This document shows, one piece after another, positions 1 to 57,551 of a DNA stretch of 64,000 nt. The stretch's first letter is position 1, and each line of letters begins with the position of its first letter. A program made the translations under genes and the position numbers. The notes beneath the pieces were generated by a model. It saw only the letters and a list, made by a program, of their open reading frames with translations, searched no databases and was not told the DNA's origin. Origin of the DNA: Sphaerodactylus townsendi (taxonomy: Eukaryota); contig NC_059429.1 of assembly GCF_021028975.2 (NCBI RefSeq), positions 91,016,001 to 91,080,000 on the forward strand, in the 5' to 3' direction.

Positions 1-1255
1 CCTTGTTGTCTTTTGAAGTGATCGACAACATTGGGGTTGCATTTTCTAGCACACACCTTTTTTCCTATTCTTTGACCCCAGAAGATATTTCAAAACCCAC
101 TCAAGACTGTATTATTAGTTTTAAAATATGTACTACAGAAAGCACATAACACTATTGCAGCACAGGGGGATGCAGGGTTCTCCATTATTTCCACCTCTTG
201 AATCTGTTTCTAGTTTCCGAGCCTGCCTTGTTTTCATCATCCAACTGTCCTCCATAATTCCCCAGAATATGTTTGAATTCAGAATAAAAGATCAATCATT
301 CCATTTTGAGTTCATCTATATGTATTGACTATCTGAGCTGGGTAGCTGTACAGCAGAGAACATTTCCACACTCACACTCTTTCCCCTAAACTTGATCAAG
401 AAAAAGAGTTAGCCATTCCTATAGAATGGGCCTGCTAAAAATCTTCTTCAGAAAAAAACAACAGAAAATAGATCTCCTAGCAGCAGACATGCTTTGTGTT
501 CAGTTAGAAGTCCAAATGAAGAAAGTCATGCAAACAAAGAACAGGCTGTGTCAAAGTGAGTATGTGAGTTGGAAAAAAAGTGACTCGGTGCACCCCTGCA
601 CTCTCCTTCTCAGCTTTGAACTGACAACTCAGGGTATAGGAAATTGCTGAAAGTGCCCCGATTCACAGCACTGTGATGATCCAGAAACTGAGCCATACAA
701 CACCCTCTCTTATCAGTGGCAGGCCACTCCTTGTGCTGTAAAATGATACACTTGGTCAACTGTTTACAGCAAGCTTGTGATTGTGAAGCTGGTTAACATG
801 TTAATGGAGACCCTGATGTACATATAAAGAGGCTGGAAACAATCTCAGGTTGGTTAGTGTTGAGTTGGAAAGTTGCTGAAGTTGTGGTCTGCCCTAACAG
901 CTGCAAGGAACAGAGAACTCATTCTAGGGCTGCCTGAACATCCACTGATTTGGTTCACATCCTGTTTGTCAGTTCAGAACAAGGAGCAAGCATTTAAATG
1001 ATTCATTGCCAAATGAAACAAACCCTGTGATTGGCTCATATATGATGGTCACACTAGAACAAGGTAAGTCACTGCTGAATATGTTTGATGCATTTCTAAC
1101 TGATTCACCATCCCTTCCTATTGATTAATATCCATTTTTTGGAGAGAGAAAAGCTATGCAGAAAAAGGTGATTCAGAAAAAAGTGATGCGGAGCCTTCCA
1201 GCCAATCAGAGTGCAGAGGGCTATGCATGATGTGCACGCAGCCTTTTTTTTGTTT

Positions 1256-2802
1256 TATTTTTATTTATTTATTTATTTATTTATTAAACTTTTATACCGC
1301 CCCATCCTCCAGGGGCTCTGGGCGGTGTACAGCATAAAACATGGTAAAACAAGTCACTAAAATCTTTAAAACAGCGGTAACAAACATTAATAGTAATCCA
1401 TAAAATAGCTTAAAACTCATAAAACAGCAAAAAACCATAATACATAATAAAAGGCGTCCGACCCCAATTTAAAACCTACCCCCATGAGGGGGGATGGCAG
1501 GACCCCTCAATATGAGGGGACCCTGATGTAACTGCCCTAGGGGCAGGGCAGTAAGGGGGCACCATATCAGCAGCTGGACACTCCAAAGGCCCGGTGGAAC
1601 AACACAGTCTTACAGGCCCTGCGGAACTCACCCAGGTCCCGCAGGGCCCGGACAGCTGGAGGAAGGGTGTTCCACCAGGCCGGGGCCAGTGCCGTAAAGG
1701 TCCTGGCCCGCGTGGAGGCCAGCCGCATCATAGAGGGGCCGGGGGCCACCAGTAAGTTGGCCTCTGCAGAGCGCAGAGGCCGAGTTGGGACATATGGGGT
1801 GATGCGGTCCCGAAGGTACGAGGGTCCCAGGCCGCGCAAAGCCTTAAAGGTCAAAACCCACACCTTGAAGATGATTCGGAATTCAACCGGGAGCCAATGC
1901 AGCTGTCGCAACACAGGCTGGATGTGTTCTCTGAAGGCGCCTCCTGTGAGCAGGCGTGCTGCCGCATGTTGGACCAGTTTTAACTTCCGAATCAAACGCA
2001 AGGGAAGGCCGGCGTACAGCGAGTTACAATAGTCCAGCCTGGAGGTGACCGTTGCATGGATCACAGTGGCCAGATCCGCCTGGGAGAGGAAGGGAGCCAA
2101 CCGCCGGGCCTGGCGAAGATGGAAAAATGCAGTCCGGGTTGTATGGGCCACCTGGGTCTCCATTGAGAGAGACGAATCCAGGTGGACCCCCAGACTGCGA
2201 ACAGAGGGGGTCGGCGCCAATGAGACCCCCTCCCACACCGGCGGCTGGAAATCCCTAACCTCACCCCTGCGGTCTAGCCAGAGGATCTCCGTCTTCGATG
2301 GATTCAGTTGCAACCTGCTCTGCCGCAACCAACCAGCTACCGCCTCCAAACAATGCTGGAGAGCCGCAGGGGCGGCAACCGCTCCCCCCTCCATCAACAG
2401 AATGAGCTGAGTGTCATCAGCATATTGATGACAGATCAGCCCAAAGCTCCGCACCAACTGAGCAAGTGGTCGCATATAGATGTTAAATAATAGCGGGGAT
2501 AGCAGCGCTCCCTGCGGTACTCCGCACTGAAGCGGGCACCTCCGGGAGGCTTCATCCCCGCACCACACTTGCTGACTCCGGTCCCGGAGAAACGAGGCAA
2601 TCCACTGAAGGACAGTGCCCCGTACCCCGGAAGCGGCCAGGCGGTGGGTCAAAAGGTCGTGATCGACCATATCAAACGCTGCGGTAAGATCTAACAAAAC
2701 CAGCAGCGCCGATCCGCCCCGGTCGAGTTGCATACGGAGCGTGTCTGTGATGGCGACAAGAGCGGTCTCCGTCCCATGCCCAGCACGGAAGCCGGACTGG
2801 AA
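1256..2802 (-). mobile_element. L2-clade LINE, 5'-truncated, young
   Basis: RT ORF on the minus strand, a 3' UTR and an (ATAA)n tail at ~1256-1285. The 5' break falls at 2802 within FQSGFRAGHGTET. CpG-rich. Possible short TSD GTTTT. Confidence 0.9.
1567..2802 (-). CDS. LINE ORF2 reverse transcriptase, C-terminal part (open frame, 5'-truncated)
   Basis: Motifs QSGFR, LLDLTAAFDMVDH, GVPQGALLSPLLFNIY, YADDTQL and the L2-type tail SRLDYCNSL...LHWLPV. The frame stays open upstream of the tracked Met at 2733. Confidence 0.9.
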   Translation of the reverse strand, partial: FQSGFRAGHGTETALVAITDTLRMQLDRGGSALLVLLDLTAAFDMVDHDLLTHRLAASGVRGTVLQWIASFLRDRSQQVWCGDEASRRCPLQCGVPQGALLSPLLFNIYMRPLAQLVRSFGLICHQYADDTQLILLMEGGAVAAPAALQHCLEAVAGWLRQSRLQLNPSKTEILWLDRRGEVRDFQPPVWEGVSLAPTPSVRSLGVHLDSSLSMETQVAHTTRTAFFHLRQARRLAPFLSQADLATVIHATVTSRLDYCNSLYAGLPLRLIRKLKLVQHAAARLLTGGAFREHIQPVLRQLHWLPVEFRIIFKVWVLTFKALRGLGPSYLRDRITPYVPTRPLRSAEANLLVAPGPSMMRLASTRARTFTALAPAWWNTLPPAVRALRDLGEFRRACKTVLFHRAFGVSSC

Positions 2803-3530
2803 GTTTTGTGCTGGTGGTGGCTACATTGAAACACGGCTGTGTGGAATGTGATTTCTGTGCCATCTGTAAGCTAAAATTAGACTTTTATGCCAATGCAGCT
2901 GCATGGGCAAAGAATGCCAAAAAACTAGAAGCCGTGCATAAACGTAGCTTAGTGTAGGCGGGGAAATCTATGTATGTGCATAGAGATATAGCTGTGCAAA
3001 AAAAGTTTTTAAAAATTCCCACCCCAACACAACGCAACAGCCAATCAGGACAAGGAACAACAGAGTCGCTGAGCAGATCACGCGTTCGTGGGGAGTGCTG
3101 CACTGTTTGAAACCGTGATAAACACTGATGTCCTTATCAAACTCATGCTGTAGTGGGGAGGGTGAAACTGCAATGAAAAGGTTCTGTTTCTTTTGAAACC
3201 TGGTTGTATTTGGCTTTAATTTGCCAGTGGGGATTCCACCTTTATGAAACCCAGTGTAAAAATGCAGTTTTCAAATAAAAAATAATACTGTGGAGTTAAA
3301 CTTTGACAATAACTTTGTATTTTGCTCACTCATGCATGGATCAGATTATTTTAGTTATTTAATTTGTATGCTGCTTTTAAGCCCATCTGTGGTTTCCAGG
3401 ACTACTTGCAACATTTTTAAAAACACACAGTGATTTCAGTCACAATATAGTAAAGCAAAGTAAGGCACCATCCTGAGCTAATTAGTCCAAATTCTGGACT
3501 CATTTTTCCCCCTAGTTTTCCCTGGAAGAC

Positions 3531-4404
3531 TGTCCAGGAGTGGGGACCACCCCCTCCTCAGACTTGCCAGCCAAGCCCTGCTGAGTCGGGTCCATTCCTG
3601 CACTGGGGTGCAGGCGGGAAGTGGCTGGGAACCTGGCCTCCCTTTCCCCCGTGTGGGAGAGGGACGTGGAGGCTCTCATTGTCTGTGGAACCAGGTGCGG
3701 CGGGAGGATGGTGGGCCTGAGAAGTTGGCACAGAGTGTTTCAGACAAGGTAGGCCAGACACCATCAGAGGCACCCTGTAGGGGTGCGCCCCTACAGAGTC
3801 GAGGCTGCTTCGGCTGGGGAGGTGGCTTTTGGGCGCCTGAGCAATTGCCCGGCTGGGCAAGGACAATGGGAGAGGGCGGGGCAGAACTGGGGGGGGGCTT
3901 GTTGCAGGAGCTGAGACGGAAGGGGATAAGAAGAGCGGCACAAGGAAGGGCGAGTTCGTCTGTTGGGATAAGGGAGTGAAGCGGGTGGCTGAGCATGTGG
4001 AGGGTGGACGGGAGAGAAGGAGTGAGGAAGGAGGAGAACAGTAAAGAAGTGAGAAGTAGAGAGGAAGAGGCAAGGGGAGATAGAGAGCAGAAGAAGGGAG
4101 AAGGCGCTGACAGGGAACAGGAGGAAGAGAGAGAGACCAGGGAAACCCACAGGCTCAAAAGCATAGAGCCAGCAACATCAGGCGGGCCAAGCTTATAGGA
4201 CATGCATTTGAGAGCTCTCCCTAATCAGTCAGACAAGCTGTGGCTTCAAAGATTGACCCAGCTAGTCCACCCCCCCTGAGAACGGGGGTGAGGCTGGGGA
4301 TTCCAACACCCAGGCAGGAGTAGGAGGGTTGGTACCAGGGGCTCTGTTGGGGACCTTGCAAGGGGAGCGGGACAAAGACCTAAAGAGACCGTGCCAGCCT
4401 TACA
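3531..4404. repeat. GC/purine-rich interspersed repeat, possible solo LTR
   Basis: Abrupt GC-rich block beginning TGT and ending CCTTACA, with a GA-rich tract at ~3990-4150. No clean TSD; boundaries approximate. Confidence 0.35.
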
Positions 4405-5859
4405 TCCTGAGAGAAGGAATTCCCACCAATCTTACCTCAAACAAGGGTGGATTGTCTATTTGCTTTACTAGGAAAATTCCAGTGTCTCACTGCCCTGGAT
4501 GGACATCCAGCTTTGTCCAGCCTGAAGGCAGAAAATAGGCACACAGCAGTACTTTCCTGCTATCCGATTGGTTCTTTGGCCCTCATGCAGTTGAGAGTTG
4601 GTATGGCAGTCAGACAAGGCAGGGCCCTTTTGGCCTTGTAGGTTGCCACAGGTGGTACCAAAGTACATAATTAAAATGAATAGCTATTTTTTTTTCAAAA
4701 GGTTTGCCTATAATGGAATGAACATTTAATTTCTTCAGGTAATAAGAGATCTGAATTGTAGCTCACTTGATCAAGATTTTGGAATGTTTGGAATTTAACT
4801 CCTCAGCAAATCAATGAATTGTCAACATGTCTGACAATGAAGTGGTTTCTGTTTTGCAAACTGTACATGATTAATCCTTAGCATAAAGCCAATGACTTGC
4901 ACAGAAGAATTTGGGACACTTTGTTTTGTATAATTGAACAGATGTATTGAATCAATACTGTCCTTTCTGTGAAACCACAGTGGTCCCATGGGAACTATTA
5001 CAGTCTCTGTGGAAAGAAATGTAAAGGAGGTGCAGTTGTTATCCTGAGATCATGGAAACAATAGTGCTTAATGGCTCCATTTGAGATCTTATGGTTGGTC
5101 ATGCCAATATATTGTTAGGGAATCTTGATCTAAAGATGATTGACATTTACACTGCATTCATTGCCTTCAGAACTGTTGTGGACATCTGTATAGCTAATGC
5201 ATTGCTTTGGACTACTGGACTGGAGATGTCGCATTTCAATAAAATTAGTGCTCATGTCATTGCCAACTAAAGCATTACACAATGAATCACACAAGCACTT
5301 CAGTAAATTCAGCTGAATGTCCTTGTACCCTGGCTGTGTTCCAGTTCAGATGACATTCATAATGCCTGCCTAGTCACCCTCTGAACTCCCACCTCCATTT
5401 CCATTTTTATGTTGCAAACAAATGTGTAATTTTGCTGTTCGCTATGCCCGAGGTGGGGGTGAACTACCTTTTTGCTGGAGGTTACAAGAAGGCTCTCCAT
5501 CTGGAACTGGGATGCTTGCCAAGAGTTTAGGACTGAAACAAACATCGCAAAGCTAAACTAACAGTACTAGTATAAATATTCAGTCTAGAAAATAAATATT
5601 TATATTAATGTATAGATTTTAAAAATATTGTTTTGATTCAGCTTAAATTAAATGAATACAATACACATTTCTTTTTTCTTAAGCAGCAAGAATTATTATG
5701 TAATATGTACAGAGAACTCTACAGATTATGCACCCTAAAAATCCTGCATATGTACCACTGCCAAGCTGTCTTTTTCTTCTATGTGGATTCATTTCTTCCC
5801 ACAATACCTTTGTCCTAACTCTGAATCTCTCTGCTTCTGAGTAACTGGAATATGCATGT

Positions 5860-6040
5860 AAGCACCTGCAACTGCTTTAATGGAGTTCTGGTTGTTGCAT
5901 CTCAAAATATTGCAGAGCTGGAAAAAGTATAGAAGAGGGCAGCCATGATGGGTGTGGAGATTATGAGGAAAGGCTGAAGAGAGTGGGGTTTCCAATGTAG
6001 AAATAAGGCAGCTGGCAACTCTACCATGAAGACCTGGGTT
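5860..6040 (+). mobile_element. CR1 LINE remnant
   Basis: ATATTGCAGAGCTGGAAAAAGTATAGAAGAGGGCAGCC resembles the CR1 ORF2 'ELEKVQKRAT' segment; degraded. Confidence 0.6.
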
Positions 6041-6164
6041 CAAATTTATACTCAGCCCTAATTATTACTAATTATGCAATTGAGATGATTATGATGATAG
6101 TAATTGTGATAACAGGGAGAAGAGCAGTTGTAGTAAGAAATAACCCAACATTAGAAAATAGTTT

Positions 6165-6580
6165 TAGTGCTGCCCCTCCCCTCTGGGGCTCTGGGTGGTT
6201 CACAACAAAGAATATACATACATAACATATAATATGATAAAATTATAAAACTAGAAATTCTAGAAATTGAAATCTGTATCAAAGTGGCAAAAACATCCCA
6301 TTACAACTGAGTTCAGATAAACTTTGAAAAAGAGGGTGAGGATAGAGAAGAAAGATTTACCATGGAATGGAGGTGGATGGGGGCAGAGATGATAATTGTT
6401 GCTGCCTCAACCATATGCCTGGTGGAACAGTTCCATCTTAAGGCTCTGCAGAACTGCATTAGATCCCGCAGAGCCCTAGACACAGAGCATGCCAGGGCCA
6501 GGGCTGAAAAAGCCCTGACTCTGATTGAGGCCAGCCGGACTTTCTCAGGTCAGTGACCACAGGTAAGTTATCACTCAATG
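6165..6580 (-). mobile_element. L2 LINE 3' remnant
   Basis: Similar to the 3' end of the 1256-2802 element (GGGGCTCTGGGTGG; GCCTGGTGGAACAG; GAGGCCAGCCG). Confidence 0.7.
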
Positions 6581-8914
6581 AACACAGTTTTCATTCAAAG
6601 TTTAAAAGTTTTTTAAAAATTTCTTTCCTGTTCCAAGCGTGATGTGTAGTTCTATCCTTTGATGATTTCCTAAGAAGCATTACTAGTAAAAGCATATAAC
6701 AGGAGGCATACTTCCTAAGTTACACATTGCTGACTCCTTTCTTTTGAAAAGGAACTGATGTATGGGCATCATTTCTTCACTTCTATCTTTATGATTTTGG
6801 CTCCCATACTATTGAAGGGTAGATTGGATTTGGAAGAACTTCTTGGCCTGATGTCCATGCTGCAAACTGCTGGCAAAGCAACGGCTGAAGTCTGGTAATT
6901 GCAATGAAGTTACAAATGGAACTGCCACAAGACCAGATGGGTTTCGGCAGGCTCAGGCATAACTGTTGCCAGAGGTACTGGACAATGTGCCAGAAGTAAC
7001 CATTAGCACTATACAGGAATTCCATTTTGGATACTACACATTCACGGGCACACAAGAGAACTTGATGGCTCATGAAATTTCTTCCAGTACTTTGTTTCTA
7101 TGATTCCGAGAAGTACAAAGCTTATATTATAAGCAATTTTCTGGCTGTGGGGTTGGAAGATAGATTGGTGCTTCATACATATGAATATAGTATCCCGCAT
7201 AAGTTGCTTCTACACTATCATCACAAACCCCATTAATAATTCTGCCTTTTTCAGTCTGCCGAGGTTTTGAAGTCTCTACTTAGTGCTAACAATAAGGTAA
7301 TTTTAATGTATGAATAAGAACAAAAAGTCAGCCTGATTACAAAGGAGGTCTGAGACCTTTGTGCTGCATTTCACTACCAGCCACCAGATAGCCCTTTTAT
7401 GGCCTTATAATAACCGAAACTTTTGAACAATCATCAGCCAACAATAGAGCTGATGTTCAAGAAATTGAGCTTTGTGCCACTGTATCCCTTCCAAGAAAAG
7501 CATCACACCCCCCCCCCCTTAAAAATACATATAATAATCAGGACTTTCTCAGACGTTTATTACTAGCCTGAAGTCATTTTCACACTTTAGAAATGACTTA
7601 ATAAGCAGGGAAATTAAACAGTGAAATTGGTTTGCATCTTCCTATTTGACTGAGTATATTCACAGGAGTGCTTTGGATCTTGATTCTACAGTGGAATTTT
7701 CAGTTTTTCAACTTAATCTACACACTAGCTTTGAATTGTGCAAGTAATGCTTACAACTTCTGTTTTATTTTGGTAATTTACAAATTCATGCCAGCTGGTG
7801 GCTGTCATTCAACAAGAGACTGGGGGGAGGGCCATGGAACATTCCATGAAATCAATGGGATGGCATCATTTCCAGAGCAAACATACAAGCAACATTATAC
7901 TACTTTGTGATTTTACCACAGAGTTTCCACTGAATCCTACAGCAGCATGACATTACTTCTGGGTTCACCCCAGAAATGAAATGATGCCACAAGGTCAGTG
8001 TGACAGCAATTTTTACCTTTTTTTCTTTTGCCAGCCTCCTGAATAGCAGCAGGGGTCAGGGGTTTGATATAGTGGGAGAACTGGAAACTGTAGATAATGG
8101 ATAAGCAGGAGAGGGGGCCAGGACACTCATGCTGGCTGCTACCCCCAAGTTCGTCATCCCTGAAGATCCCCTTTTTTGTCATAACTTCTTCTTTTCTCTG
8201 TACACATGTATGGCTCAGTGTGGGCCTAGAAATGATAGAATGAGTCTGAATTAAACTGATATCAAAAGGCATTGAGTCATGCTAAGAAGAAAGGGAATGC
8301 AGGGCAGCTCCTCTATCAATCATGCAAATACTCACTGAAGAGGGATTCAGTCAATGGTCATTTGCACCAAGGACCTAAGAGTTCTTACCAGATAATTTTT
8401 TCCTAACTAATGACTCAGATCTCCAATACAATAAGCAACAGGCCAATTTGAGCCCCACTGAATATAATCAGATTTACTTCTGTATAAACAAGCACAATAT
8501 TGAATTGTAGGGACAAAATCCTACCAAATTCTAGGACATTTTTGTGGCAGCCAGAGTTTTCAGAACAGACTGCAGTCCCCAATGGTTTCAAATCACTGTC
8601 GTTCATACAAACTAGTATATATTTTGGAAGCAGAGACATGTGGAATTAATGTTCCACTAGCCTTGAAGCTTGTGCGAGGCCTATAGACATCTGGTTTCTG
8701 GTTAATTTAGTTGACTTTCATTGTATTACATGAGATAAGAACATCAGTAACATAAACACGATTAGCCTTTTATATATATAGATGAGGGAGGAATTTTAGG
8801 TTTTTATTTTAGTCCTTCCATTCACAATTCAAGAAAATTGGGGGAGGGGTGAAGACAAAGAATATGTAAATGGGGTGGGGGAACCAAACTATGTCTTCAA
8901 CAATGGGAGAAAAC

Positions 8915-9090
8915 ATGGTTCAGTGTGGCAGAGCATCTGGTTGGCATACAAAGTTCTTGATTGCATTCACCAGCACCTCCCGTTAAAAGGATCAGGCGGT
9001 GGAAAATGTGAAAAAACCCTGCCTGAGACTCTGGAGAGCTGCTGCTAATCTGAATACCCAACAGTTGATGGATTAAGGGTCTGATTCTGT
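8915..9090 (+). mobile_element. tRNA-derived SINE with CR1-like tail, degraded
   Basis: Degenerate A/B-box head (TGGTTCAGTGTGGCAGAGCATCTG...) and body CCTGAGACTCTGGAGAGCTGCTGC. Confidence 0.55.
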
Positions 9091-10074
9091 TGGAGTGGGA
9101 CTATGGGGGTTGTTTGCCTCCATTTCTTTCAACAGTTTCCCTAGTCAGGCTGATTTCCAGTATCAGAACACATCTTGGGGAAAATATTTCCATCACAAGA
9201 GAACATTGCGGTAAGGCATGTCAGAGTTAGGAATTGTTCTTACCCACAGGCTCCACTTAGCTTTTAAAATTCATCCACTATCGCTGGCTTTAAATATGAA
9301 TAAGTACAGCCATGGATTGAATTCATACTGAACTGACAATTTCTGATTCCCCCTTCTTGCTGTAGACCCTCCTATGGCATACTTCAGGGCCACGAGGCAC
9401 ACGAAGCTGCAGTAAGAGAGAGGAAAGTTCCATTCTGCCACTGGTAAATTTAGACTGGATCTAACCTATTGCAGCCATTTATTCAGCTTGTTTGAATGTT
9501 GCTTTTTATTTTATTGCATACCTTTGTGTGCCCAGAACCTGCTTTCTTGTGTTGCCAAACACTGCCCCCCCCCCGGCCCCAGCTCATGCTACATGAAATA
9601 ATGTTAAAGGTTTTAAATTTTAAACAGAAGCTTTTTCTCCTATATGCCTGAAATTTGGCATCCAGTTGATTTGAGAGTTATAGTGAGAAATATGTTTTCC
9701 ACTAAAACCAATAGCAGTTTTTTTTTAAAGTAAGCATTATTACAACAAATTAAGAGGAACATTGTGAAACTGAAATGAAAATGAATAACATTTTTATTCA
9801 GGTCCATAAGCAAAATCAGAGAAGCGCCAGTGTGCAGCAATAAGCCCCATGGCAGGATTAATTAAAACCTTGATTGGCAGAGGAGAGGAGGCTCTGTTTG
9901 TTAACTGGAAATGCCTACCTGTAGGAGGTATGATACAGAGACTAGGTCAAGTTGTTGATAGCAGTGTTCACCTTATCTTGATTACTTACTTCTCCTGGCT
10001 ATCCTAGTTGTTTGAGGCTTACAAATATTTTTCCAGCTTTGTAACATTTTGATTTACAGACTACTTTACAGCTC

Positions 10075-10225
10075 CTGTTATATGTAGCCACACATAAGTC
10101 TTGCAAAGCAGATCACCATTATTCCTATGTCACAGATGGGGAGACTGAAACAATGTACATTGACCATGGCCATTTAAAGAGTCCATGGCAGAGATGAGAA
10201 CTGAGCCCAGATCTTTTGAACCAAA
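10075..10225 (-). mobile_element. MIR/CORE-like SINE remnant
   Basis: ATTATTCCTATGTCACAGATGGGGAGACTGAAA resembles the MIR core. Confidence 0.5.
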
Positions 10226-10439
10226 TCCAACTCTAAACCATCAGTTATGATGACATGAATCGGACATAATGCCAAACCATATTCTGGCATTTTATATATG
10301 AATTCTGTCCTTGCACACTCTCTCCTCTCCTCTTTTGAGCAATTGTAGTAAATGAATGACTTCCTCATAAGATGAAACCATAGTTCAGTATGATATCCAA
10401 AGCACCAACCGTGGTTTGGACAACAGTAGAAATAATAAT

Positions 10440-21199: not shown

Positions 21200-21413
21200 T
21201 ATTGAAGGCTTTCACGGCTGGTTGTGGTGGGTTTTCCAGGCTGTGTAGCCGTGGTCTGGTAGATCTTATTCCTAACATTTTGCTTGCATCTGTGGCTGGC
21301 ATCTTCAGAGGTGTATCACAAAGAGAAGTCTGTAACAGTGTGTATGGAAATGTTAGGAACAAGATCTACCAGACCACAGCCACACAACTTGGAAAACCCA
21401 CCACAACCAGTTG
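21200..21413. mobile_element. Penelope-like element terminal remnant in inverted arrangement
   Basis: The minus-strand arm (CTCTGAAGATGCCAGCCACAGATGCAAGCAAAATGTTAGGAA...GTGAAAGCCTTCA) faces a plus-strand arm (GAAATGTTAGGAACAAGATCTACCAGACCAC...CAACCAG). Confidence 0.75.
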
Positions 21414-21612
21414 GAGCACTGGTCTCAGTTTCTTATAACTCCAGTAAACAGAGTAATCTGTACAGTCAGTCTTGGAATCTTTTATGTCAGTTTTCAGTAC
21501 TGTTAAGAGCAAGACTGTTTTCAAACTGTGATTCTATGATACTGATGCACCTGAAACAACCATGCTAATAACTCGACAGTTATACAGCTTTGGCCCTTGT
21601 CTGCTGAGATAG

Positions 21613-21930
21613 TGTAAAGGTTTCAATGGTGTTGATTCTCAGCACAGCCGCTTGGCCTTGACTGAATTCCAGGACTCGGGCGATGGGCCAGAAGCGGCGG
21701 CTATTTCCCTGGTAGAGGCCTTATCTCACAGAAAGAGATGAGAATGCCGTTCCCATGAGAATGGGACTGGGGAAACCGGGAGGGGGATGGGACGGAAAAG
21801 CTTATAACCTGTGGTTCTGGCGGGAGACTTCATTCCTGTCACGGCGTGTACGTGAGCTTTCTAAGATGTCTGAATAAACGGTCTTTCAACCAAAAAAGCC
21901 TTTTATTTCTGCTCTATGGAATTCCTTACA
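21613..21930 (+). repeat. 5' LTR of element A (318 bp)
   Basis: TGTAAAGG...CCTTACA. TATAA at 21803, initiator-like TCATTC at 21830, AATAAA at 21873. Confidence 0.97.
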
Positions 21931-21932
21931 TT

Positions 21933-21943
21933 GTGACAGGAAT
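21933..21943 (+). promoter_or_regulatory. self-priming PBS of element A
   Basis: GTGACAGGAAT is the exact reverse complement of ATTCCTGTCAC at 21832-21842, the predicted transcript start. Confidence 0.85.
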
Positions 21944-21989
21944 CCTCTTCATTTTACTTCTAAATATCAGTGGACCTCTGGGTTTCCGG

Positions 21990-24185
21990 CATGCAGAGGT
22001 TGAATATTCCTGAAACTGTGGAAGGCACGGTAGCCCCCATAGAGGGCTCCGAACCTTCCCTTCCTGACTTGGAAGAACCAGTGGGAGAACGGGTCTCGCT
22101 GGTAACTCTCTCCCGTCCTCGCCTCCACACGAGTCTTCCCTTACTTCGTTGGGATGAGGGACACGGAAACGATCATGCGGAGTTGCATGAGTCGTTTGGG
22201 GCGCTGTCTATGGATCGTGCGCCTGTGGATCGGATCTCTACCCGTTTTCGTGTGGATTACAAACCTCAGATGCAACGTGTCGCGGAGGAGATGGGTGTGA
22301 CCACCGTTCATGCGGCTACCCAGGAGTTCCATTGAACGGTTCCTTGACTTCGTATTTCGATGTTACGTATTCAAGAATCCACAGTGGCATAGCAATCGGG
22401 TCAATCGTCCCAAGACGCCAGTTGATACCGGGACTCAGTTAGCGGGATCGGGGATTGGGAGAAGAGGTTTCCGAGTCATTCTCAACCGGGCCCCTCAGAT
22501 CCGGGACGTAGCATAGCTGAAGCACAAGAGTATTCGCTGGAGTCGCGTCGGTGGACTTGAGGTGCTGCTCTCCGATGCCGAGGAGAATCCGAAGAAAGTC
22601 ATGACTCATCCGGATTTACTCCCGTCCAAAGAAAACTGGAACGAGGAAGTGGCCCCGACTGCAAGATGCCCAAGAAGGCGTGTGGAGCGTGAGCGCCAGG
22701 CTAAGTGGGAGGAGGAACGAGAACAGCTAAAAGAAAGCGTGAGAACCTGCAAAGAGACCGTGAAAACAGCGCAAAGCACATCTAAGCTTCGAACTGGACC
22801 GAGCCAAAAGACGGCGTTGCAACGGCAATATAAGCAGGATTTATCGATCCATGATAAGTGGTCCTGGAGCACTCTAGAATGGACCTGGAACGTCAACGCG
22901 AAGGCATTAAAGCCATCCGTCGACGCAGAGTGAACTAATCTGCGTAGCCATGCAACGACCGAAATAGCCAAATTGGACCGAGAAAAGCGGCCCTGCATGC
23001 GATCAAAGATGCCTTTATTCCCGCAAGGAGATAGGGTCATGAAGCTGTCTTGGAGCAGGAGTTGAAGAAACAGCGGGATAGGACCTTTGAGTTGGTACTT
23101 TCGCTTATCACCCAAAGCGCCCAACGATCAATGCCCCTCCTCGGAGCCACAGCTTCTAGGTCCTACTACTTATATGCACATTCCGCCTCCCAAGGACCAT
23201 GCTTTCGCCAAAGAGGGGTCAGCGGTGCGCCAGGCCCAGTGCCTCCATCAATCGATTACTGCGTCTTCCCCCTCCGCCGCATCAACCAGCGCCCAACCCG
23301 CAGTCTCCAGCGGGCCTCCAAGGGCCATGGAGAGGGGATACCACAGGCCCCTGATCCCACGTCTGCAAGTTTCGACGGGACCGCTTCTAAACTTCCCTAC
23401 TTCATTGCTGCAACTTCGATGCACAGTATGGAGGAGTATGGCTGACTTATATCGGTATTCTGACAGGCATTGAGAAATGCGGGACATCCCGGGTCTGTAC
23501 AAGATGGGGTGGCTGCTGACTGGTTTTGTGACTCTTTTGAGCTGCAAGCGGATATACTCGACAGTGGCTGCATTTCTTCAAGCCTTCACGGGCTCCTCGC
23601 TTCCAAGATCCGGACGCTGAAAATGAAGCCATCCGCGCCATAAAAATCTATTCGGCAGGGCAACCCATTACTTTTGCCGAATTTTGCTGCGTTAATTCGC
23701 GTGCGGGCGGCTGCTCGACTTCACTCCTGAGTGGCCTGAACGCATGAAATGTGGAGAATACTTCTCTTCGATGCCATTGACATCGTAAAACTTTCTGAAC
23801 GGTTGTTTCTCATCCGTATCCCTCGCGCATCTATTGCTGAATGGATCGAATTGGGATCTTCAAATGGCGGCGTTCGTTTGGATACGTCGGCTGGCTTTCG
23901 GTGTCGTCCACGCCCAAACCCCGCTTCTCTGTTTAACGCCTAGGCGACTGCGCAAGTCAAGCTCCAGCCGTCTCTACCGAAAACCACCTCCGAGCATGCG
24001 ATGCGTCATTTGGGATTGTGCGCTCTATTGGAGGAGGTGACCAGGGCCATCTGGCTGCCAACTGCCCGAAAAAAAACAGAAGTCCACCGCTCCGACCCCA
24101 CGCACCCCCCCTCTGCCAAATGGCAATATCGGAGATCGGGTCCTCCTCCAGCAGGCTCGTCTAAAGCTGTTGCCGAAGGCTAAGA
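21990..24185 (+). pseudogene. gag: gag of element A (frameshifted in this assembly)
   Basis: Coiled-coil segment RVERERQAKWEEEREQLKE, capsid-type motif ASFDGTASKLPYFI (~23365) and CCHC knuckle remnant GLC..(C)....GHLAANCPKK (~24010-24075). Bounds approximate. Confidence 0.75.
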
Positions 24186-24289
24186 TCCCGAGGAGAGTGG
24201 CTATTTGCCTCTCATCAGCACCCATGGATGTGGATCCTACTCCTGATGCTTGTTGAGTGAAGGCAGCACCCTGCCATTACTGTTCAAGC

Positions 24290-27200
24290 GGTTCTCGGCC
24301 AACCCTACTAAACGCATACATTCGCATTCCTAGCACTCACGAGCCCTCGCGATTCTGGCTGCTCCCATTTGCTTAATGCGGCCCCAAGTGGCTGAAGAGC
24401 TCTGGTTTTAGACCGAGTTCCTAATAGCAAAGCCCATACCGTTTCACATAAATGGACGGTAGCTCACTCGGAGCGAGAGGTCCGTTTCTCGATTCAAAAC
24501 GCGGCCTGTCGGCTTCTTCGTTGCTAGCTGACCATTTGGGAGAGGATTGGTTTTATACTTGCTCCAGTGGCCAAACTTATTCCATTGTCCTGGGCATGCC
24601 ATGGTTAAGTTGGTTACATGAACCAAATATTATTTGGAAAGAATGGATTCTAGAATTCCACTGATCCCCCATGTGGAGAAAGCATATGCATTGGGGAGAC
24701 AGCCCCACCATCCAAATGACACCGGAAACCCTGGTTTCTTCGGTTGTGCACATCCCAATGACTTTCAATTCCACAGGCATTCCACCCAGCTTACCAGGAC
24801 TTGTAGCCAGAGTGTTTCAGGAGAACAGGAATGTGATCAATACTGCCCCCATAGAGACACTGACTGCAAAATTCATATGTATTACAACCGGGGCTCAACT
24901 ACACCAAGGGTAGAATCTATCGTTATGAGTTCTCAGCGAAGAGAAGGAAACTCCGTGCGCTTCTTAGATAAAAACCTTGCTCGCTGATTCATCCAGCATT
25001 GAGGCGCTACTAAACATGCACTTACGCTGCTCCTGTCCTATTTGTAAAGAAAAGCGATCGGGTCTTTAAAGACTTTGTACTGATTACCGAGGGATTAAAT
25101 GCTGTTTCCATGTCAATAAATACCCTTTGCCCTTAATCAAGGACCTCTTAGATGCATTGTTGGGCAAAGGGACGCATTCTTTACTTCGAAGTTGGATTTG
25201 AGGGAAGCTCACTACTACAGAGTCAGGATTGCCGAGGAAGGCTACCTGAACATTTAACAGCATTTAATACTAAATTTGGACAGTTATGAATACTTAATTA
25301 TGCCATTCGGGTTAGCTTGGGGCACCCCGGCGCATTCATAGCCCTCATCAATGAAGTTTTGCATGACTTACTATATAAAGGAGTAGTTGTGTAATGTAGG
25401 CGATTGTTTTAATTTATTCACAATAAACCATGGAGGGCATGAGGCTTTGGTTCGGGAAGTATTGCAGCGTTTACTCAACAACTCCTCTTCGCTAAAACTG
25501 TCTAGAGTGCTGTTTTCATCAATCCTCCATAGACTATTTAGGCTGCCAGGATCTCATCTGAGGGTTTAAAAAATGGATCCTCGCGAAGATTGACGTTGAT
25601 CCTCAATGGCCTGCCCCACACCAACCGGAAGGAGCTCCAATCCTTCCCCTAGGATTTGCTAATTTTTATCGTGATTTTATGCACCCCAATTTTGCTGAAC
25701 TAACCCTTCCCCACTCTCACAGACCTTTACTACGCATCTAAGGGGTAAAGACCTCACAGGCTACCAAAGCCCGGGGCTCCCCTCCTTGGTCTCAGGAATG
25801 TCAAACAGCCTTCCAGCTTTTGAAATCGGCTTTCCACTACCGATGGCCTGTCTTAAAACACCCCGACCCAGACCTTCGCTTTCATGGTTCCGCGTGCGAT
25901 GCTTTGGACAAAGGCGCTTGGCGCAGCCCTGTTGCAGAGAAATAAAGATGGTAGGCTTGTTTCCGTATGCTTATTTATCAAAAGAAATTCTCCGGCTCAG
26001 AACTCAACTTGGACGTAGGGGATAAAGAGACTGCTGCCCATCGGGTAAGCGCTTTCCCACTTCTGAAGGTCACTTTGGCTTGAGGGGGCTAAACGCTCCA
26101 GGTTTGGTCGGATCACAAGAACTTTGGCTGCCCTCTCCACCCCCCCTCAGAATGTCTGCAAAGGAAACAACTTCGTTGAGGCCGATTTCTTTCCTGTTTT
26201 TCTTTCCTGTCCATTTTTCCCCCGGAAAAACCAAATAAACTTCTTTGATGCTTTGTCGGCGCCTTCCTCGAGGAGGGGTGGAGCTGCTTCTACGAGACAT
26301 CCCGTGCACTGTTCTCTCCCCCTCCCAACTAGGGCTGGTCACGTCACTTTCGATTCTCAGAGTCATCGCTCCTCCTCCATGCAGCCCGTTCCTTCCAGCC
26401 TGGTCTACGCCTTCCTGCGGGAACTTCGAGGTAGCGGGTCTTGGCGGGAACTTCGCCGGCGGATAGTGAAGGCGACTCCCAGTTGCGCTTTGGTGAATGG
26501 AGTTTTGGAAGCCCGGGGGGGGAATTGTTGGTACGTGCCTCCTTCGTAGAAAGCAAGTTCTCGAAGCCTGTCATGATGCCCTTTCGGCTGGACATTTTGG
26601 CTTTCTCAAAACACTCGCATTTCAGCCCGCCGTCAATTCTGGTGGCAACGCCATCGCGTAAAGAACATTTGAGAAACGCTTATATCGAAGGGGTGCTTTC
26701 TGTTTGTGCGTGAGGCCAAATCCATTCAGGGGAAAGCCCCATGGACTGGCTTCAAAACCTCCTCGGTTGCCTCCCGTCCCTGGGAAGTTATCTCAATGGA
26801 TTTTATTACGGATTTACCAGAGGAGTTTGCAAGCAGAAACACAGTCTTGTGGGGGGGTGGTGGACCCTATTCTCCAAACAAAAAAGCCCATTTCATTCCC
26901 TGCACCTCCATTCCCTCGGCTCCTAAATTAGGCGCTACTGTTCATTCAACATATATATCGTCTACACTCCTCCCCCCTCAAGGTGGTGTCGACCAGCTTG
27001 GGCCTCAATTCATTTTCAAAATTCTGGAAAGCTTTCCTGGGCTTATTGGGGGGGCCACCCCGGCCGGTTGCCGTCGCCCTACCATGTTCAAAGTGGCGGT
27101 GAAGGTCGGAAAGCAAAGCGAACAGAACTCTTGAACAGATATTTACGTTGTTACACCAACTATCACCAAGACAACTGGTCGCGATTTAATTCCGTTTGCA

Positions 27201-27950
27201 GAATATGCCTACAACAATGCCGTTCATAAAGGCGATGCGCAAAAAAAAACCCCTTGAAATTGTGTCTGGCGGCTCCTTCCACGCCATTGCCCGCCAACTA
27301 CCCGTGAATGCTTCAATCCTCAGAATTCCAGCAATGGATTTCATCTCTGTGGCGGAGGGGTGGAAAACGGTTCAGACCTCTGCTTTTGCAACAAGCTAAA
27401 AGATTCCCCCCCCAAAAGTTCCAGGCGGATAAACATCGTTCTGACTTTCCTTTGCGTGTTGGGGCTTGGGTCTGATTTGTCATACGCCTAAAACCTCAGA
27501 AGGCGATACATAAATTTCTCGGGGAAACCTGGGCAAAAAGTTCGTTAGGACCTTTTAGAATTACAAAAGTGCGATTAATGATGTTACTGCCCGGTTAGAT
27601 TTGCCTAGTGGATTAAAGTAATATCCATCCTGTCTTTCATTCCAGCTTGCTCAAGGAGGCTCCCGCTTCCCGACATGCCTGGCACGACACCTCCGGAAAT
27701 ACCCCGCCGACTATAATACCGATGGCCACAAGCATTATGAAATTGACACCCGGATCCTGGACTCTGCGTTTTAATGCGCTTAATGCGCCATTGCAATACT
27801 TGGTTTCTTGGGTGGGGTATTCCTCTGGGTATGGCGAATTCAATGGAATTATTATTCAGAAAATATTGACGCCCCCTCCCTTATTTCTGCTTTCCACTTC
27901 GTACCTTCCCGCACAAACCAGGGGAGAAGTTTTTCTTAGGGAGAGCAGCA
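24290..27950 (+). pseudogene. pol: pol of element A: protease, RT, RNase H, integrase, chromodomain (frameshifted in this assembly)
   Basis: DSGCS (~24350), KYPLPLIKDLLDAL and KLDLREA (~25120-25210), LIMPFGL, PWEVISMDFITDLP, YLRCYTNYHQDNW, GPFRI, LQYLVSWVGY. Confidence 0.9.
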
Positions 27951-27951
27951 G

Positions 27952-28277
27952 TGTAAAGGTTTCGAATGGTGTTGATTGCTCAACTGGCATGTCGCATGGC
28001 ATTCGACTGAATTCCAGGACTTCGAGGCGATTGGGCCAGAAGCGTGACTATTTCCCTGGTAGAGGCCTTATCTCACAGAAAGAGATGAGAATGCCGTTCC
28101 CATGAGAATGGGACTGGGGAAACCGGGAGGGGGATGGGACGGAAAAGCTTATAACCTGTGGTTCTGGCGGGAGACTTCATTCCTGTCACGGCGTGTACGT
28201 GAGCTTTCTAAGATGTCTGAATAAACGGTCTTTCAACCAAAAAAGCCTTTTATTTCTGCTCTATGGAATTCCTTACA
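27952..28277 (+). repeat. 3' LTR of element A
   Basis: The last 230 bp are identical to 21701-21930; the first ~95 bp differ by scattered indels and substitutions. Confidence 0.97.
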
Positions 28278-31004
28278 GATAGGTAGGTAGTAAGTGTTCA
28301 ACTAGGTGTGCAGAACAGTAAAAATAAAATAGTATCTGGCCATTTGGCACCCAGATGATGCCTGACTCATGAAAAGTTTCTTTTAGGAAGGCTTTAAAGT
28401 GAGAAGACTTTAGAGAACTTGATAGTATTATGTGGGGATCCAGATTTAATGAATTGGGTTCATCAACTGGCTTTGCACCAGTACTCAGCCCTCTTTCTGA
28501 GAACTGCAGCTCAGTTGGCAAGATAGGCTTCATGACCCAGTAATGATATAAGGAAGATCAATGATACCTTATACTGCGTTAGGATTTTTTTTACTGCAGA
28601 TCTATGAACTGCAGCACAGTGGCTCATTAGATTTGTTCATTTATAGATAAGAGTGATCTCTCTTCAAAAGGATAATGAAAGCTTAATCATTTCCAGCAGC
28701 ACTTCATACTTTTCTTGAATGCAGCACTCTTGTTTTTGTCTGCAGTTCCTTTTGATCCCTGTCAAATACCTTGATCATTCAAAACACAATGTGTAAAACA
28801 CTAAGAATATTACAACTGTCATCATTATAAAACTTTGTGAGAGAACTCCAGTTGTGAAATGCAATTCTAGTCTCTTTGATCTTTAACTGAATAACTTAGT
28901 CTTCTATGTGCAAAGACCCTCTGAGATGCAGTTATGGATCCATTTTGGAATATGGAGCAGAAAAGTCTAGGAATGTTTCTGGGGAGAGTAAGAATAATGG
29001 ACATGAGTAAAAAATGTGGTAAAAAACTAATCCATGCTTAAATAGAGAGATCCTTCTCTTGGAATGTCATGCAAACCCAGTTTAATGTCATTGGGTATAC
29101 GATAAGGCAAATGAGAAGTATCAAACATGATGAAGAAGCTTAGATATTTATCTGTGTTTTCATGGAGTGTGTTTGAAAATGAGGGAGATGACAACCCCTG
29201 GTTTGACCCTGAAATTTGCAAATTCGGCTGAAAATTTACAGTGAACTTTTATTCGGCTGAAAATTCGGCTGAAAATTTATAGTGAACAGAAAAAGCAGTA
29301 TTCTTGATCATGAAGAAGGAGCTTATTCAAAATTCATCACATATAAGGCCAAAATTCATCATATAGAAGACATGCTCTTGCTCCCCTTCATGCCCGCTCA
29401 GTGAATCAATGAATGAATGTCTGAAGAGAGCAACTACATCCACTTAGTACAATCTTTGCAGATTTGAGGAGGGAATGTGGTAAGGTATAAGGGAAGACAA
29501 AGACCTGCACAACATTCTTATTTTGGTAGGAAATTGGCCACAGATACAGGCAAAGGAGCAGAGGTGCAGCAAGGGGAAAGATCCTAGATCTCAGATCCTG
29601 CTGTCTGATGAATACCACTCCTAGCCCAGCTGTTGGGGGAAACCTCAGATCCTGTCATCAGGCAACCCATACGCCATCTGTGGAAACACCTTTCTCCAGG
29701 TTGCCTGCTACTGAAAACTATGGAATAGGAGGTAACTGGAGGCCAAGCAAGTTCTGGCTTCTACATGATCCCCTTGCCAGTTAAAGGTGTCGACCAGCTG
29801 GCTGCCCCCATCTGGGTATGCAGCTTGGTGGTTTTCCACAACTAAAGACCAACAATGGGGAGGCAGGCACTCAGGCACAGCCCCCTCCAAATGGATCTGT
29901 CACAATGTCCAATCTGCCAAATTGTCACAGAATGCAAAAACAAAATCAAAGAAAACAACATAACCACTGTAAGAACTGGATCCAACCAACAAGATAAACA
30001 CAAGGAGAGTGGGTGGGCAATTTTTACTCTCTAGAAAGAGTCACAAAGCCAACTGATGAATGGGCATTGGAAATCTTAATTTATTCAGTTCTTAACATTG
30101 CCCTCAGAAAGGTAAGTATGAAGAAGGAATTTTAAAGAATTTATTCTAAAAGGCATTTTCTACAGCTTGAAAAAAATCCACACAAATGGTTGTTTCTGAA
30201 AAACATTTCCATTGCAAGTGTTAAGGCCATATTAAATTGATTTGTGACACTGGAATATGCAGCATTATTGTTGCTGTGTTTGGCTTTGGAAGAAAGACGA
30301 GAAAGAAAAAAGTTTAGAAATAGCAAAAGGCCTTTGTACATGATTTCATACATTCCCCTTGCTTATAATAATATTTTCCTTGTAGTGCTATTGTTTTGTT
30401 CAGCATGACTGTGAAAACACAGACTAGCTGAAAGCTCTCATAAATATAGACACCCATTGAAACTGAAGTCCTCTTATTCTTGTCAGTGCATAATACTCCC
30501 TAGTACATTGAAAAGATATGATCCTTGTCCAAAAAACCTTGTGTTTTAGTAATAAAAAGAAGCATGAAAAATGAGGCAAAGGCAAGCAATCAGATAGCAA
30601 AAGCCAAGGGTAATAAACAGAATGCAGTGGAGGTAATTATGCAATGTGACCGATTAGGTGCATTAAAAGACAAGCCAGTTTTTAATATTTGTGAAAAGCA
30701 TGCATAAGTCAACAAGACCTTGTTCTCAACAAGGGTCAGTTAAGCCTGGCACTGACAACAGTGAACACCAGAGTTAGCCTAGCATATTTGCTGGGCTATA
30801 ACTGGCCAACCAGTGTAGGGCAGGAGAGACTTGTAAAGTGGTACAACCATTTGTGAAGAAAACTGACTCATTCTGTCTTCTTAATGACATGTAGCATTAA
30901 CTGGTCACTTCAGTGCCAAGCAAGAATTTTTGGAGTCTTTTCATTTTGGTCTATGCACATACAGCCAACACTGAGGAAACTGGTCAATTGGTTTCAGGAT
31001 CAAA

Positions 31005-46777: not shown

Positions 46778-47108
46778 TGTAAGGGTGGGGGTTAGTTTCT
46801 GCTCTTTCTGCCTGGCCTTCCAGCGATATCCTCGTTCTTGGGCTTCGCGTCCGGGGTGGTTTGTGGCCTTAACCTTGTGCTGTGATTATCTTGTGTGTTT
46901 GAAGCTTGTTTCTGTTCTGTCATGGGAATTCTGCTGGGACGTTTGGGGGAGGTGGCTGAAGGTTCCGTAAAAGCGACACCTGAAGCCCGGGAAAGTCAGA
47001 ATCTGGTGATCCCGGTATTGGCGACATTACTGAAGTTTCTTATGAAATAAACGTACATTGAACTCAGTTGCCCTTTCGTCGTTCGAAGTCCTTTTGAGGT
47101 TCCTTACA
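46778..47108 (+). repeat. 5' LTR of element B (331 bp)
   Basis: Colinear with 53371-53679, with extra small insertions. AATAAA at ~47046. Confidence 0.95.
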
Positions 47109-47110
47109 TT

Positions 47111-47123
47111 ATGCGCGGATTCT
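47111..47123 (+). promoter_or_regulatory. putative self-priming PBS of element B
   Basis: ATGC(GC)GGATTCT is complementary to AGAATCCGCAT in the 3' LTR (53585-53595) if a 2-nt insertion is allowed. Confidence 0.65.
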
Positions 47124-47199
47124 CACTTCTCTCTATCTTCGGATTGATTTTGGGTCACTACACCTTGTCCATCCGGTTTTGTGGGATCCCCCTGATACC

Positions 47200-50100
47200 C
47201 AATCCAGACATGTAGGGATTTCCTGAACACCGAGAGCTCGCCGTGACTTGGAAGGTGATTAAGACTCGTGGTAGCCCCCAAAGAGAGGGCTCCATATCTT
47301 CCTTCCAATAACAACGCGGTCTCCTCTTGGAGGGAGCCAGCGGAACCCGGCCTCCCTGGTGACTCCTCTCTAAGCCCCTCCTCGCTCAGCCGGAGCTTTC
47401 AGGGCCTTCCTCCAACTGCATGAGCAAATGGAAGAAGCCCCCCTGATGGCTCGGCACACTGTTTCGGCCGGCCAGCAAGTAAGCGCCAGGATTTCGTACC
47501 GCATCCTGGTGGGCGAGTGGAGGTCGATGGGATCATGCTTCTGGGGGGCAACATTCTCACCACCCGCCAGCATAAGGGATTTCATAAACCGGTGATGCAA
47601 TGTGTCGAGGGAGGAAATCGGGTATCAAATCCATCCACGGGACACAGCAAGAGACCCCTGGGCAAGATTCCTTCTGGATCAATACCTCGAGGATCCCTCT
47701 CCCAAGATCACTGAGTAGAGCACCGAGCACGCCTACGAAAGGTTTATACTCTCTAACGCACTCCAGGATCTCCTCCTCCTCTGAGGGAGGAAGTGTTGGA
47801 GTTACCTAACACTTCCAGACTCAGGGCTCCACTTTCACAGAAGATGCCCGCATCTCGCTAACCCTCCGGACTTCATCGGATCTCGAGGAAGCGTTAGCCA
47901 GCTGCCTCTTGGAGCGGTGCCCGGCCTCCCAGATCTTGACTCTTGGATGGGGCTACCAGCCTCTACCGCCTATGCGGATGCAACGGCCCTCCTGGTTAAT
48001 CGGATCTTTGGGGAACAGATGGAGGCTCTCGAGAGAACCAAACGGGACTGGGAGCAGGAACGGATGGCTCTCGTGAAAGCCAGCGCAGCGAAGCCTTAGA
48101 ACAAGAACGTGAACAGCAGCCAGGGAGCCGTGGAAGTGTAGCGAACTTTCATCAGAGAAGGATGTCCTAAGAGATCAGTTCCTCAAAGACCTCACTTCCC
48201 GTGGACCGAAGTCCCAGAACACCTCCCTGACTCGAGCTCCAGCGCCAACGCCAATGCCTTTAAAGCGCTGGAAACCAAGGAGTAGTCGAGGCGGAACTGC
48301 AACGTAGGAGAACGGGATAGACTTGGCAACGCGAATGGGAGGCTCCCTCACACCGCCGTGGGAGAGGGAGTTGGCGTGGCAAGGGAGGCTGCACGCCCGG
48401 AGAGATCTCCCGCCACCAGTGGCTTCCTACTCCAGCACCGGTGGTGCAACTCACCTGGCCTATTCATCAGCCTCGGGATCGTACTCACTCCCCCACCCCA
48501 GCTGCAGAGTCCTACTCCCCGTGCAAACCTCCAGCCCCGGGTCCAGGGGGGCGCAACCACCGCCTGCACAAGCTCCCGCCCCAGTCTCCACGGAAGCTGG
48601 TAGGGGTTACCCTCGCCTTCCGCCATTCCTGCACGCTTTGGATGGGACAGCTTCCAGTGTTGCCATATTTCATCCTTACAACTCGGGACGCACACATGCT
48701 TTGAGTTTGATGGGATTTTATAGGTCCTAAGCTTTCGAGAAGCTGTTGCGTGACATCGGGTCCGTGGCTGGATGGAGACGCTGAGCAGAATGGTTTTTCT
48801 GTGGAATTGTAATTGAAGTAGCAGGGGGCCCTGGAACTTCAAACCGTGGCAGCTTACTTCAAGGGGTTGCAGTAAACTTCTGTTTTCAAGATCCGAAGAG
48901 GTGAGCAAAGCCATCCAAGACTGTTAAAACTCTCAAGCAGGGGAAATAGGCCAAACTCTTTGCAGAGTTCACCCGAGTAATTCCGGTTGGCCACGTAAGC
49001 AAGCTCCCCGCGAGTCTCGCCCTAACGCATGAAATGTGAATACTACTCCACCATGCTGTTGAGGGAGGAAATCTGCACCTGGGTACATGCATGCGTGCGT
49101 GGAACCCCAGACCATTGCCAGAGTGGGATTACAACCGGGCAACCTTATTGCGGCCCGCCTTTAATCACTCCAAGATGGGGGAAAACCGCCCACCAAACTC
49201 CCTCCTGCCAAACCCTTCTGCCAAGCAAACGGGTAACGACGGTCGCCGGCCTCTCCGCCGGTAAGGCGGAAAGTGCAGTGACCGCCGTCAGCCAATCCAC
49301 CTTCTGGAGCACCGCCTGCCGCCAAGGCTGCCTCATTGTGGCCAGGGCCCGGGCCCTACATGGCGGCCAACTGGGCCGTTCTAAAAAAACAAAAGGTGCG
49401 CCTGTCCCTCAGCCCCCCGCAAGTCAACGGCACTTTAACTCCTCAAGTAAAGGACAGGTCCTCGGGGGCCTGTACAAGGAGCTGCGAAACCACCTGGCTA
49501 TGATGACGCAGTCTGGGGAGACCGGCTGACACCGGAACTTGAAGGTGCAGCCTTTCACAGTGGTCCCATGTATCGTGGAAGAGTTTCCTGGGCGCCAGGA
49601 TGCGGGTGGAGTGAAGGGCTGAAGCCCTCTATAACTATTAAGTGACCACGCCAACCGTAACACCTCCAAGCACACCCATTATTCTGGCACGAAGCTCAGG
49701 AGGATTCCTGCTGGCTGTTGCTAATTTCCACTTGCCTTTATGAAGCCCTCCCAGGTGGCTGGACGCAACTAGGACTCGAACGTGAGTAGCATTGGCTTCA
49801 AAACCACTCCAATTCTCTACTTCAAGTGGATGTGGTAGCCCGTTGGGCACCAACGGTCCCGGCCCCAAGCTTCTGAAGACTCCAAACCAGTGCTTCTAAG
49901 TATGTGCTGAATAACACTGGGAAAGATCGTAGCTTCATTTTGGCTCCAGTCGCCAAACATCCCAGGTAGTGCTGGGCATGCCCTGGCTCCTCTCCCATGA
50001 ACCCACCTCATCTTCTGGGGACAACGAGATAGTCTCGGGATTCCCAATTCCGGATCCCCCTCTGTGTGGGAATTCATTACATGCACGTAGGGGTGAGCCG

Positions 50101-53388: not shown

Positions 53389-53679
53389 TTTCTGCTCTTT
53401 CTGCCTGGCCTTGGCGCATTCCTCATTCTGGGCTTCGTGCCCGGGGTGGTTGTGGCCTTAACCTTGCTGTGATTATCTTGTGTGTTTGAAGCTTGTTTCT
53501 GTTCTGTCGTGGGAATTCTGCTGGGACGTTTGGGGGAGGTGGCTGAAGGTTCCGTAAAAGCGACACCTGAAGCCCGGGAAAGTCAGAATCCGCATCCCGT
53601 GTATTGCGATCATTGAAGTTTATGAAATAAACGTACTGAACTCAGTTCCTTTGTTTCGAGTCCTTTGAGGTTCCTTACA
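53371..53679 (+). repeat. 3' LTR of element B (309 bp)
   Basis: TGTAAGGG...TTCCTTACA, direct repeat of 46778-47108. Confidence 0.95.
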
Positions 53680-57550: not shown

Positions 57551-57551
57551 C

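Follow-up and report, generated by a model that had tools for sequence, protein, structure and literature searches.

The window analysed here, a 64-kb stretch of the Sphaerodactylus townsendi genome, contains an LTR retrotransposon on the plus strand at 21613-28277, which we call element A. Its parts and immediate borders are the following.

21608-21612, plus strand: 5' TSD, GATAG; the identical 5 nt follow the 3' LTR at 28278-28282
21613-21930, plus strand: 5' LTR of 318 bp, TG...CA, aligning to 27952-28277
21803-21807, plus strand: TATAA box, 29 nt before the first paired base, A21832
21832-21842, plus strand: primer segment ATTCCTGTCAC, nt 1-11 of the predicted transcript (start site inferred), the exact complement of the PBS
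21846-21850, plus strand: 5' arm of a short stem, GUGUA, which in the MFE folds pairs with the U5 end and spacer (21927-21931) and stacks under the primer/PBS duplex
21873-21878, plus strand: AATAAA polyadenylation signal, inside the R hairpin
21931-21932, plus strand: TT spacer from the LTR end (CA) to the PBS; each related junction has a spacer of 1-3 nt, mostly 2
21933-21943, plus strand: PBS GTGACAGGAAT, complementary to 21832-21842
21944-27937, plus strand: interior, with remnants of gag, protease, RT, RNase H and integrase in Ty3/gypsy order, and many frameshifts and stops
27938-27951, plus strand: polypurine tract AGGGAGAGCAGCAG, adjoining the 3' LTR
27952-28277, plus strand: 3' LTR of 326 bp, TG...CA, with a copy of the primer segment at 28179-28189 whose 8th base is also T
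28278-28282, plus strand: 3' TSD, GATAG, matching the 5' TSD

Two observations concern the left flank of this insertion. About 200 nt upstream of element A lies an inverted repeat, 21218-21410, whose 63-nt arms (21218-21280 and 21348-21410) are 92% complementary and 67 nt apart; it is possibly the remnant of a hairpin-forming MITE or a SINE. In addition, a 4535-nt contig from one public DNA run (X2, a second sample of the same organism as another run) matches 21400-21612 with no differences. The match stops exactly at 21612, the insertion boundary, so that the contig may represent an empty-site allele or may simply break at the repeat. Elsewhere in the window, at 56506-58843, there are several families of direct repeats (96-179 nt, 83-90% identity, spacing 1.2-2.0 kb), which suggest local duplication.

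The interior of element A is heavily damaged. It carries 57-85 stops per frame, and when the gag, RT and IN proteins of a related S. townsendi element (L001, described below) are mapped onto it they fall in that order with all three frames interleaved. Pfam searches of ten ORF fragments returned one match only, a weak, sub-threshold RT_RNaseH_2, and were blank for the C-terminal fragment 27617-28102, in which a chromodomain was sought; residues 250-530 of the L001 integrase, chromodomain included, nevertheless align to 27074-27979 of element A. The two LTRs differ unevenly: the last 230 columns of their alignment are 100% identical, and the 6 mismatches and 12 gap columns all lie within the first ~98 (21613-21710 versus 27952-28057). 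This uneven distribution, together with the frameshifted interior, suggests either recombination or conversion, or local errors of assembly or polishing. An earlier reading of the letters alone (the sequence-only reading) had described a young element with an intact priming structure; as a description, young and intact fits only the R-U5-PBS structure and the TSD, the coding interior being frameshifted throughout. As assembled, element A is non-autonomous and could undergo reverse transcription only with proteins supplied in trans, and since the locus has no usable ORFs, its priming module is a fossil.

A second, diverged element, element B, occupies 46778-53679 of the same window and shares ~67% identity with element A in pol. 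The following parts of it are used below.

46778-47108 and 53371-53679: LTRs of element B
47111-47123, plus strand: PBS ATGCGCGGATTCT, 2 nt (TT) after the 5' LTR (46778-47108)
53587-53597: partner of this PBS in the 3' LTR, AGAATCCGCAT

The flanks of element B lack a matching 5-bp TSD (ACTGC versus TTGAG), and its LTRs are several indels apart in their R-U5 part and nearly identical in their U3 part. It retains an intact 378-aa integrase ORF (52252-53385) with rve, SH3_Tf2-1 and Chromo domains in Pfam (Chromo E=2.6e-9). The best relatives of this ORF are squamate proteins, the closest from Sphaerodactylus townsendi, and then fungal chromoviruses. A better preserved relative of element A is L001, found on another S. 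townsendi contig, with ~70% nucleotide identity over nearly the whole length of element A. Its 318-bp LTRs are 100% identical to each other, and its ORFs contain, by Pfam, a Ty3-type gag/capsid, protease, RT, RNase H, integrase and Chromo (E=2.4e-11) in Ty3/gypsy order; Ty3 is also the best solved-structure match. The RT has further relatives in geckos, snakes, lizards, tuatara, frogs, many teleosts and one smut fungus, and the gag protein search gave one relative only. Judged by these similarities, element A is best classified as a defunct vertebrate chromovirus, one of the chromodomain-bearing Ty3/gypsy elements that make up the sushi-like clade. Chromoviruses of reptiles were already known (PMC2774666, citing Piskurek et al. 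2008), and the same paper describes a “Fungi/Vertebrates” chromovirus cluster whose vertebrate members (Amn-like and Sushi-like) form the V-clade. The order of the matches seen here, vertebrate proteins first and fungal chromoviruses next, fits that cluster.

The feature of element A that concerns us most is the relation between its PBS and its own LTR. As the sequence-only reading had pointed out, 21933-21943 is the exact reverse complement of 21832-21842, at 11 of 11 nt (GTGACAGGAAT versus ATTCCTGTCAC), and the upstream arm begins at an initiator-like site (A21832 within TCATTCC) 29 nt after the TATAA box at 21803-21807; both statements are correct. The PBS begins 2 nt (TT) past the end of the 5' LTR, and the only further exact copy of either arm within the window is the 3' LTR copy of the first arm at 28179-28189. 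Watson-Crick pairing is confined to these 11 nt, as nt 12 and 13 (G, G) could form only G.U pairs with the TT spacer; it likewise ends after nt 11 in L001, in a B-like element of S. townsendi (the L004 element), in L005 and in L007, two of the loci listed below. Nine of 20,000 dinucleotide shuffles of the element A LTR give a complement of at least 11 nt at offsets 0-4 (4.5e-4). When every seventh position of the window was compared with its preceding 318 nt as a real-sequence control, 39 of 9,072 positions passed the same test of at least 11 nt (~4e-3). Given these rates, a single LTR/PBS match of at least 11 nt is, on its own, suggestive only, and the weight of the argument rests on the relatives.

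Folding of the R-U5-PBS region is predicted to bring the two arms together. The segment 21832-21946 pairs its 5' end with the PBS at a ΔG of -35.2 kcal/mol (z -5.5), and 0 of 200 shuffles are as stable. In single-sequence folds of element A, L001, L004 and L005, the R-U5 region is closed by the 5'-end/PBS duplex in every case, with z from -3.0 to -5.5. In an RNAalifold consensus of four gecko leaders, the terminal duplex is kept, with compensatory double changes in 12 of 27 pairs, and a second stem, in which GUGUA pairs with UUACA at the U5 end, is nearly invariant among the four sequences. The AATAAA signal also keeps its place, at +40/+41 from the predicted start in element A, L001 and the L004 element. 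A search of Rfam gave no family match in 21500-22200.

We compared element A with twelve other junctions, taken from geckos, rattlesnakes, a Logan contig, medaka and element B in the window. They are given below as LTR partner, spacer and PBS where these can be written out.

L001, S. townsendi: ATTCCTGCCAT / TT / ATGGCAGGAAT, at LTR position 220, the same as in element A
L004 B-like element, S. townsendi: AGATTCAGCAT / TT / ATGCTGAATCT
Element B, this window: 3' LTR AGAATCCGCAT versus PBS ATGCGCGGATTCT, a 2-nt indel from a perfect duplex; the 5' LTR partner is degraded
L007, Paroedura picta: GTTATTATCAA / AA / TTGATAATAAC
L006, P. picta: a 14-mer after TC
L006, P. picta, opposite strand: GGAAGCTCTTAC / TC / GTAAGAGCTTCC, a 12-mer
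L003, Crotalus adamanteus: AGCGCAAACTTT / GG / AAAGTTTGCGCT
L003, second copy: AGCGCGAACTTT with AAGGTTCGCGCT, showing one A.T to G.C switch at paired positions and one G.U
L005, C. adamanteus: AGTGCTGACTT / GT / AAGTCAGCACT
L002, C. tigris: one mismatch in the duplex
L009, Logan contig: AGCACTGACTT / GG / AAGTCAGTGCT
L008, medaka Oryzias melastigma: GCCAGATCGT / TT / ACGATCTGGC, a 10-mer

All twelve keep a PBS complementary to their own LTR, while the letters themselves differ and co-vary; family copies without the complementarity, which would have spoken against the self-priming idea, were not among them. The complements measure 10-14 nt, and 1-3 nt (mostly 2) separate them from the end of the LTR, which is the terminal CA at all junctions except for GA in L009. 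A TATA-like box stands ~29-32 nt upstream of the LTR partner at nine of the junctions. No such box can be made out in L005, the second L003 copy or L006a; in L006b the distance between the box and the beginning of the extended complement is only ~18 nt. Element B and the C. tigris copy have imperfect duplexes, as one would expect after decay. It is this comparative evidence that is decisive, and the complementarity is maintained in active lineages.

Two details of the comparison should be recorded separately. At L002, a repeat at 6063-6858 with a 10-nt match was considered as the LTR and rejected, as the true LTR ends upstream at ...GCTGACA. On the minus strand of L006 (26459-26954, P. picta), LTR and leader are complementary over ~25 nt, interrupted by a 1-nt bulge; on its upstream side this stretch passes beyond the TATA-guided start position, so that part of it may lie in U3.

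Variation among the copies of element A's own family (family A) was surveyed in Logan contigs from four public DNA runs of three organisms. The family is extremely abundant, with thousands of contigs in these runs. At 21839, the 8th base of the primer segment, 86-100% of the summed family depth has C, compared with T in element A; a family A solo LTR in S. townsendi, ATTCCTGCCAC, has C as well. The contigs also show a PBS variant, GTGGCAGGAAT; at loose contig ends it reads TTGTGGCAGGAATCC, with G at 21936, the pairing partner of 21839. In element A itself, both LTRs read T (21839 and 28186) and the PBS reads A. Because both LTRs derive from one cDNA, the T.A pair was already matched when element A integrated, and it is a compensatory variant of an active lineage, not a product of decay after insertion. 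The next base of the leader, 21843 (nt 12), is polymorphic (G or T) among family A copies, which fits a need for pairing at nt 1-11 only.

Taking these results together, we think it very probable that element A belongs, as a dead copy, to a very abundant gecko chromovirus and keeps in its leader a working-looking self-priming module of the Tf1 type. The Tf1-style, tRNA-independent priming put forward in the sequence-only reading thus gains support, in that the complementarity is kept in place and co-varies in each related copy or family; the priming step itself is what we infer from this. We propose the following scheme, in which start site, RNase H cleavage and priming are all predicted steps. 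Pol II would start at A21832, 29 nt after TATAA. The first 11 nt of the transcript are predicted to fold back on the PBS at 21933-21943 and to close a hairpin of ~100 nt containing R and U5. By analogy with Tf1, cleavage by the element's RNase H would follow at the nt 11/12 bond and leave C21842, the partner of G21933, with a free 3' OH. From there, synthesis would run through TT, U5 and R as far as nt 12. The product would be a minus-strand strong-stop DNA of ~90 nt, and no tRNA would be required. In the general retroviral scheme, plus-strand strong-stop synthesis copies the primer, and changes in the primer can in this way pass to the PBS. Such copying of the primer into the PBS would help both arms to stay matched.

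The pairing of the 5' end with the PBS could also be real and under selection for a different function (packaging, dimerisation, translation control or shielding of the PBS, for instance), with some other primer in use. Structure and covariation prove that a pairing is conserved, not that it primes, and retroviral leaders likewise hold conserved U5-leader stems. However, at all junctions examined the paired segment takes up the very position required of a PBS, just after the LTR, and no alternative conserved PBS is visible at them; in Tf1, moreover, the same arrangement is the proven primer (PMC7175516). Because the paired segment holds the place of the PBS and has no conserved competitor for it, a purely structural role is the less economical explanation, and we consider it unlikely.

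Priming by a host tRNA, tRNA half or tRNA fragment, with an incidental match to the LTR, seems still less probable, at a few chances in a hundred at most. The sequence-only reading had stressed that the PBS contains no TGG. That is so in element A (TTGTGACAGG) but not in its family, since the commoner PBS, TTGTGGCAGG, and that of the S. townsendi relative L001, TTATGGCAGG, both contain TGG. The commoner family A variant, TGGCAGGAATCC, in fact begins with TGG, and CCTGCCAC is, we presume, similar to the anticodon loop of tRNA-Gly-GCC. A fixed host primer nevertheless fails to explain why the PBS differs among gecko, snake and fish families while each family's own LTR changes in step, and the PBS of element A lost its TGG while the LTR partner changed to match. 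A scan with ARAGORN detected no tRNA genes in the 64-kb window or in eight loci of relatives. As for a chance inverted repeat, ~0.4% of arbitrary window positions do pass the same test, but the comparative data refute this explanation, as the twelve other related junctions all repeat the geometry with letters that differ and co-vary, and we give it practically no credence.

Self-priming of this kind is known from fission yeast. The PBS of Tf1 is complementary to the first 11 nt of its own mRNA, which is cleaved after nt 11 and before nt 12 (PMC7175516). Self-priming has been implicated from fungi to vertebrates (PMC4600332, PMC6317226) and was proposed for vertebrate sushi-group elements (Butler et al. 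2001, as cited in PMC4600332 and PMC6317226). With Tf1 and Tf2 of Schizosaccharomyces pombe and Tj1 of S. japonicus, the element A group shares a PBS matching the predicted first 11 nt of its own RNA (PMC7175516, PMC4600332), a duplex that closes the R-U5 structure with a short stem beside it, a 5-bp TSD, an integrase chromodomain (here in element B and L001) and, probably, no need for a tRNA-type PBS. It differs from them in its squamate host, in its unrelated DNA sequence and in a duplex length that ranges from 10 to 14 nt among the vertebrate relatives; cleavage at nt 11/12 and priming, moreover, are proven in Tf1, whereas for element A they are only inferred.

Among vertebrate elements, the closest comparison is with the sushi-group or V-clade, which includes sushi-ichi of pufferfish and Amn-ichi, Amn-ni and Amn-san of Anolis (PMC2774666). 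These are chromodomain-bearing Ty3/gypsy elements like family A, and lizards, snakes, tuatara, frogs and teleosts supply the proteins nearest to those of element A, element B and L001. Family A is distinct from them as a separate gecko family of very high copy number, its kinship being judged by protein matches. The Tcn1-clade of fungi, mosses and club-mosses is also predicted to self-prime and clusters with the Tf1/Sushi chromoviruses (PMC6317226); we liken it to element A by its description. Its hosts are different, and fungal chromoviruses are the nearest non-vertebrate matches to our elements.

Element A is therefore no discovery of a mechanism, but a further, well-supported example of one already described for vertebrate sushi-group elements, and it leaves the known picture of self-priming unchanged. 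Its value is that of a clean, covariation-backed case in a squamate, for a mechanism whose proof comes from fission yeast alone and which, in vertebrates, has the standing of a proposal. We know of no experimental demonstration of self-priming in a vertebrate element of the sushi-like group. From medaka through geckos to rattlesnakes the geometry is conserved, with a spacer of 1-3 nt (mostly 2), a duplex of 10-14 nt and, in most cases, a TATA-like box ~30 nt upstream. For annotation, this means that PBS finders based on tRNAs will miss such abundant reptile elements, and a rule based on self-complementarity would catch them.

We also suggest, tentatively and at rather less than even chances, that family A is active in the gecko lineage now or was so very recently. 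The suggestion draws on its thousands of copies, on the T.A variant present in both LTRs and the PBS, on a relative with 100% identical LTRs and on the possible empty-site allele of another individual. If it is true, the genealogy of the copies would record how changes in the 11 nt pass from primer to PBS during self-primed reverse transcription in an amniote; such transfer of information has, to our knowledge, been studied so far only in fission yeast.

A last observation concerns the S. townsendi locus L004. At 1-10271 of this locus, the B-like element is present in tandem with a period of 6281, and 1-3966 is repeated at 6282-10271 with 98.7% identity. Each tandem unit contains a family A solo LTR in reverse orientation (831-1135 and 7136-7440) with the TSD GTCTC.
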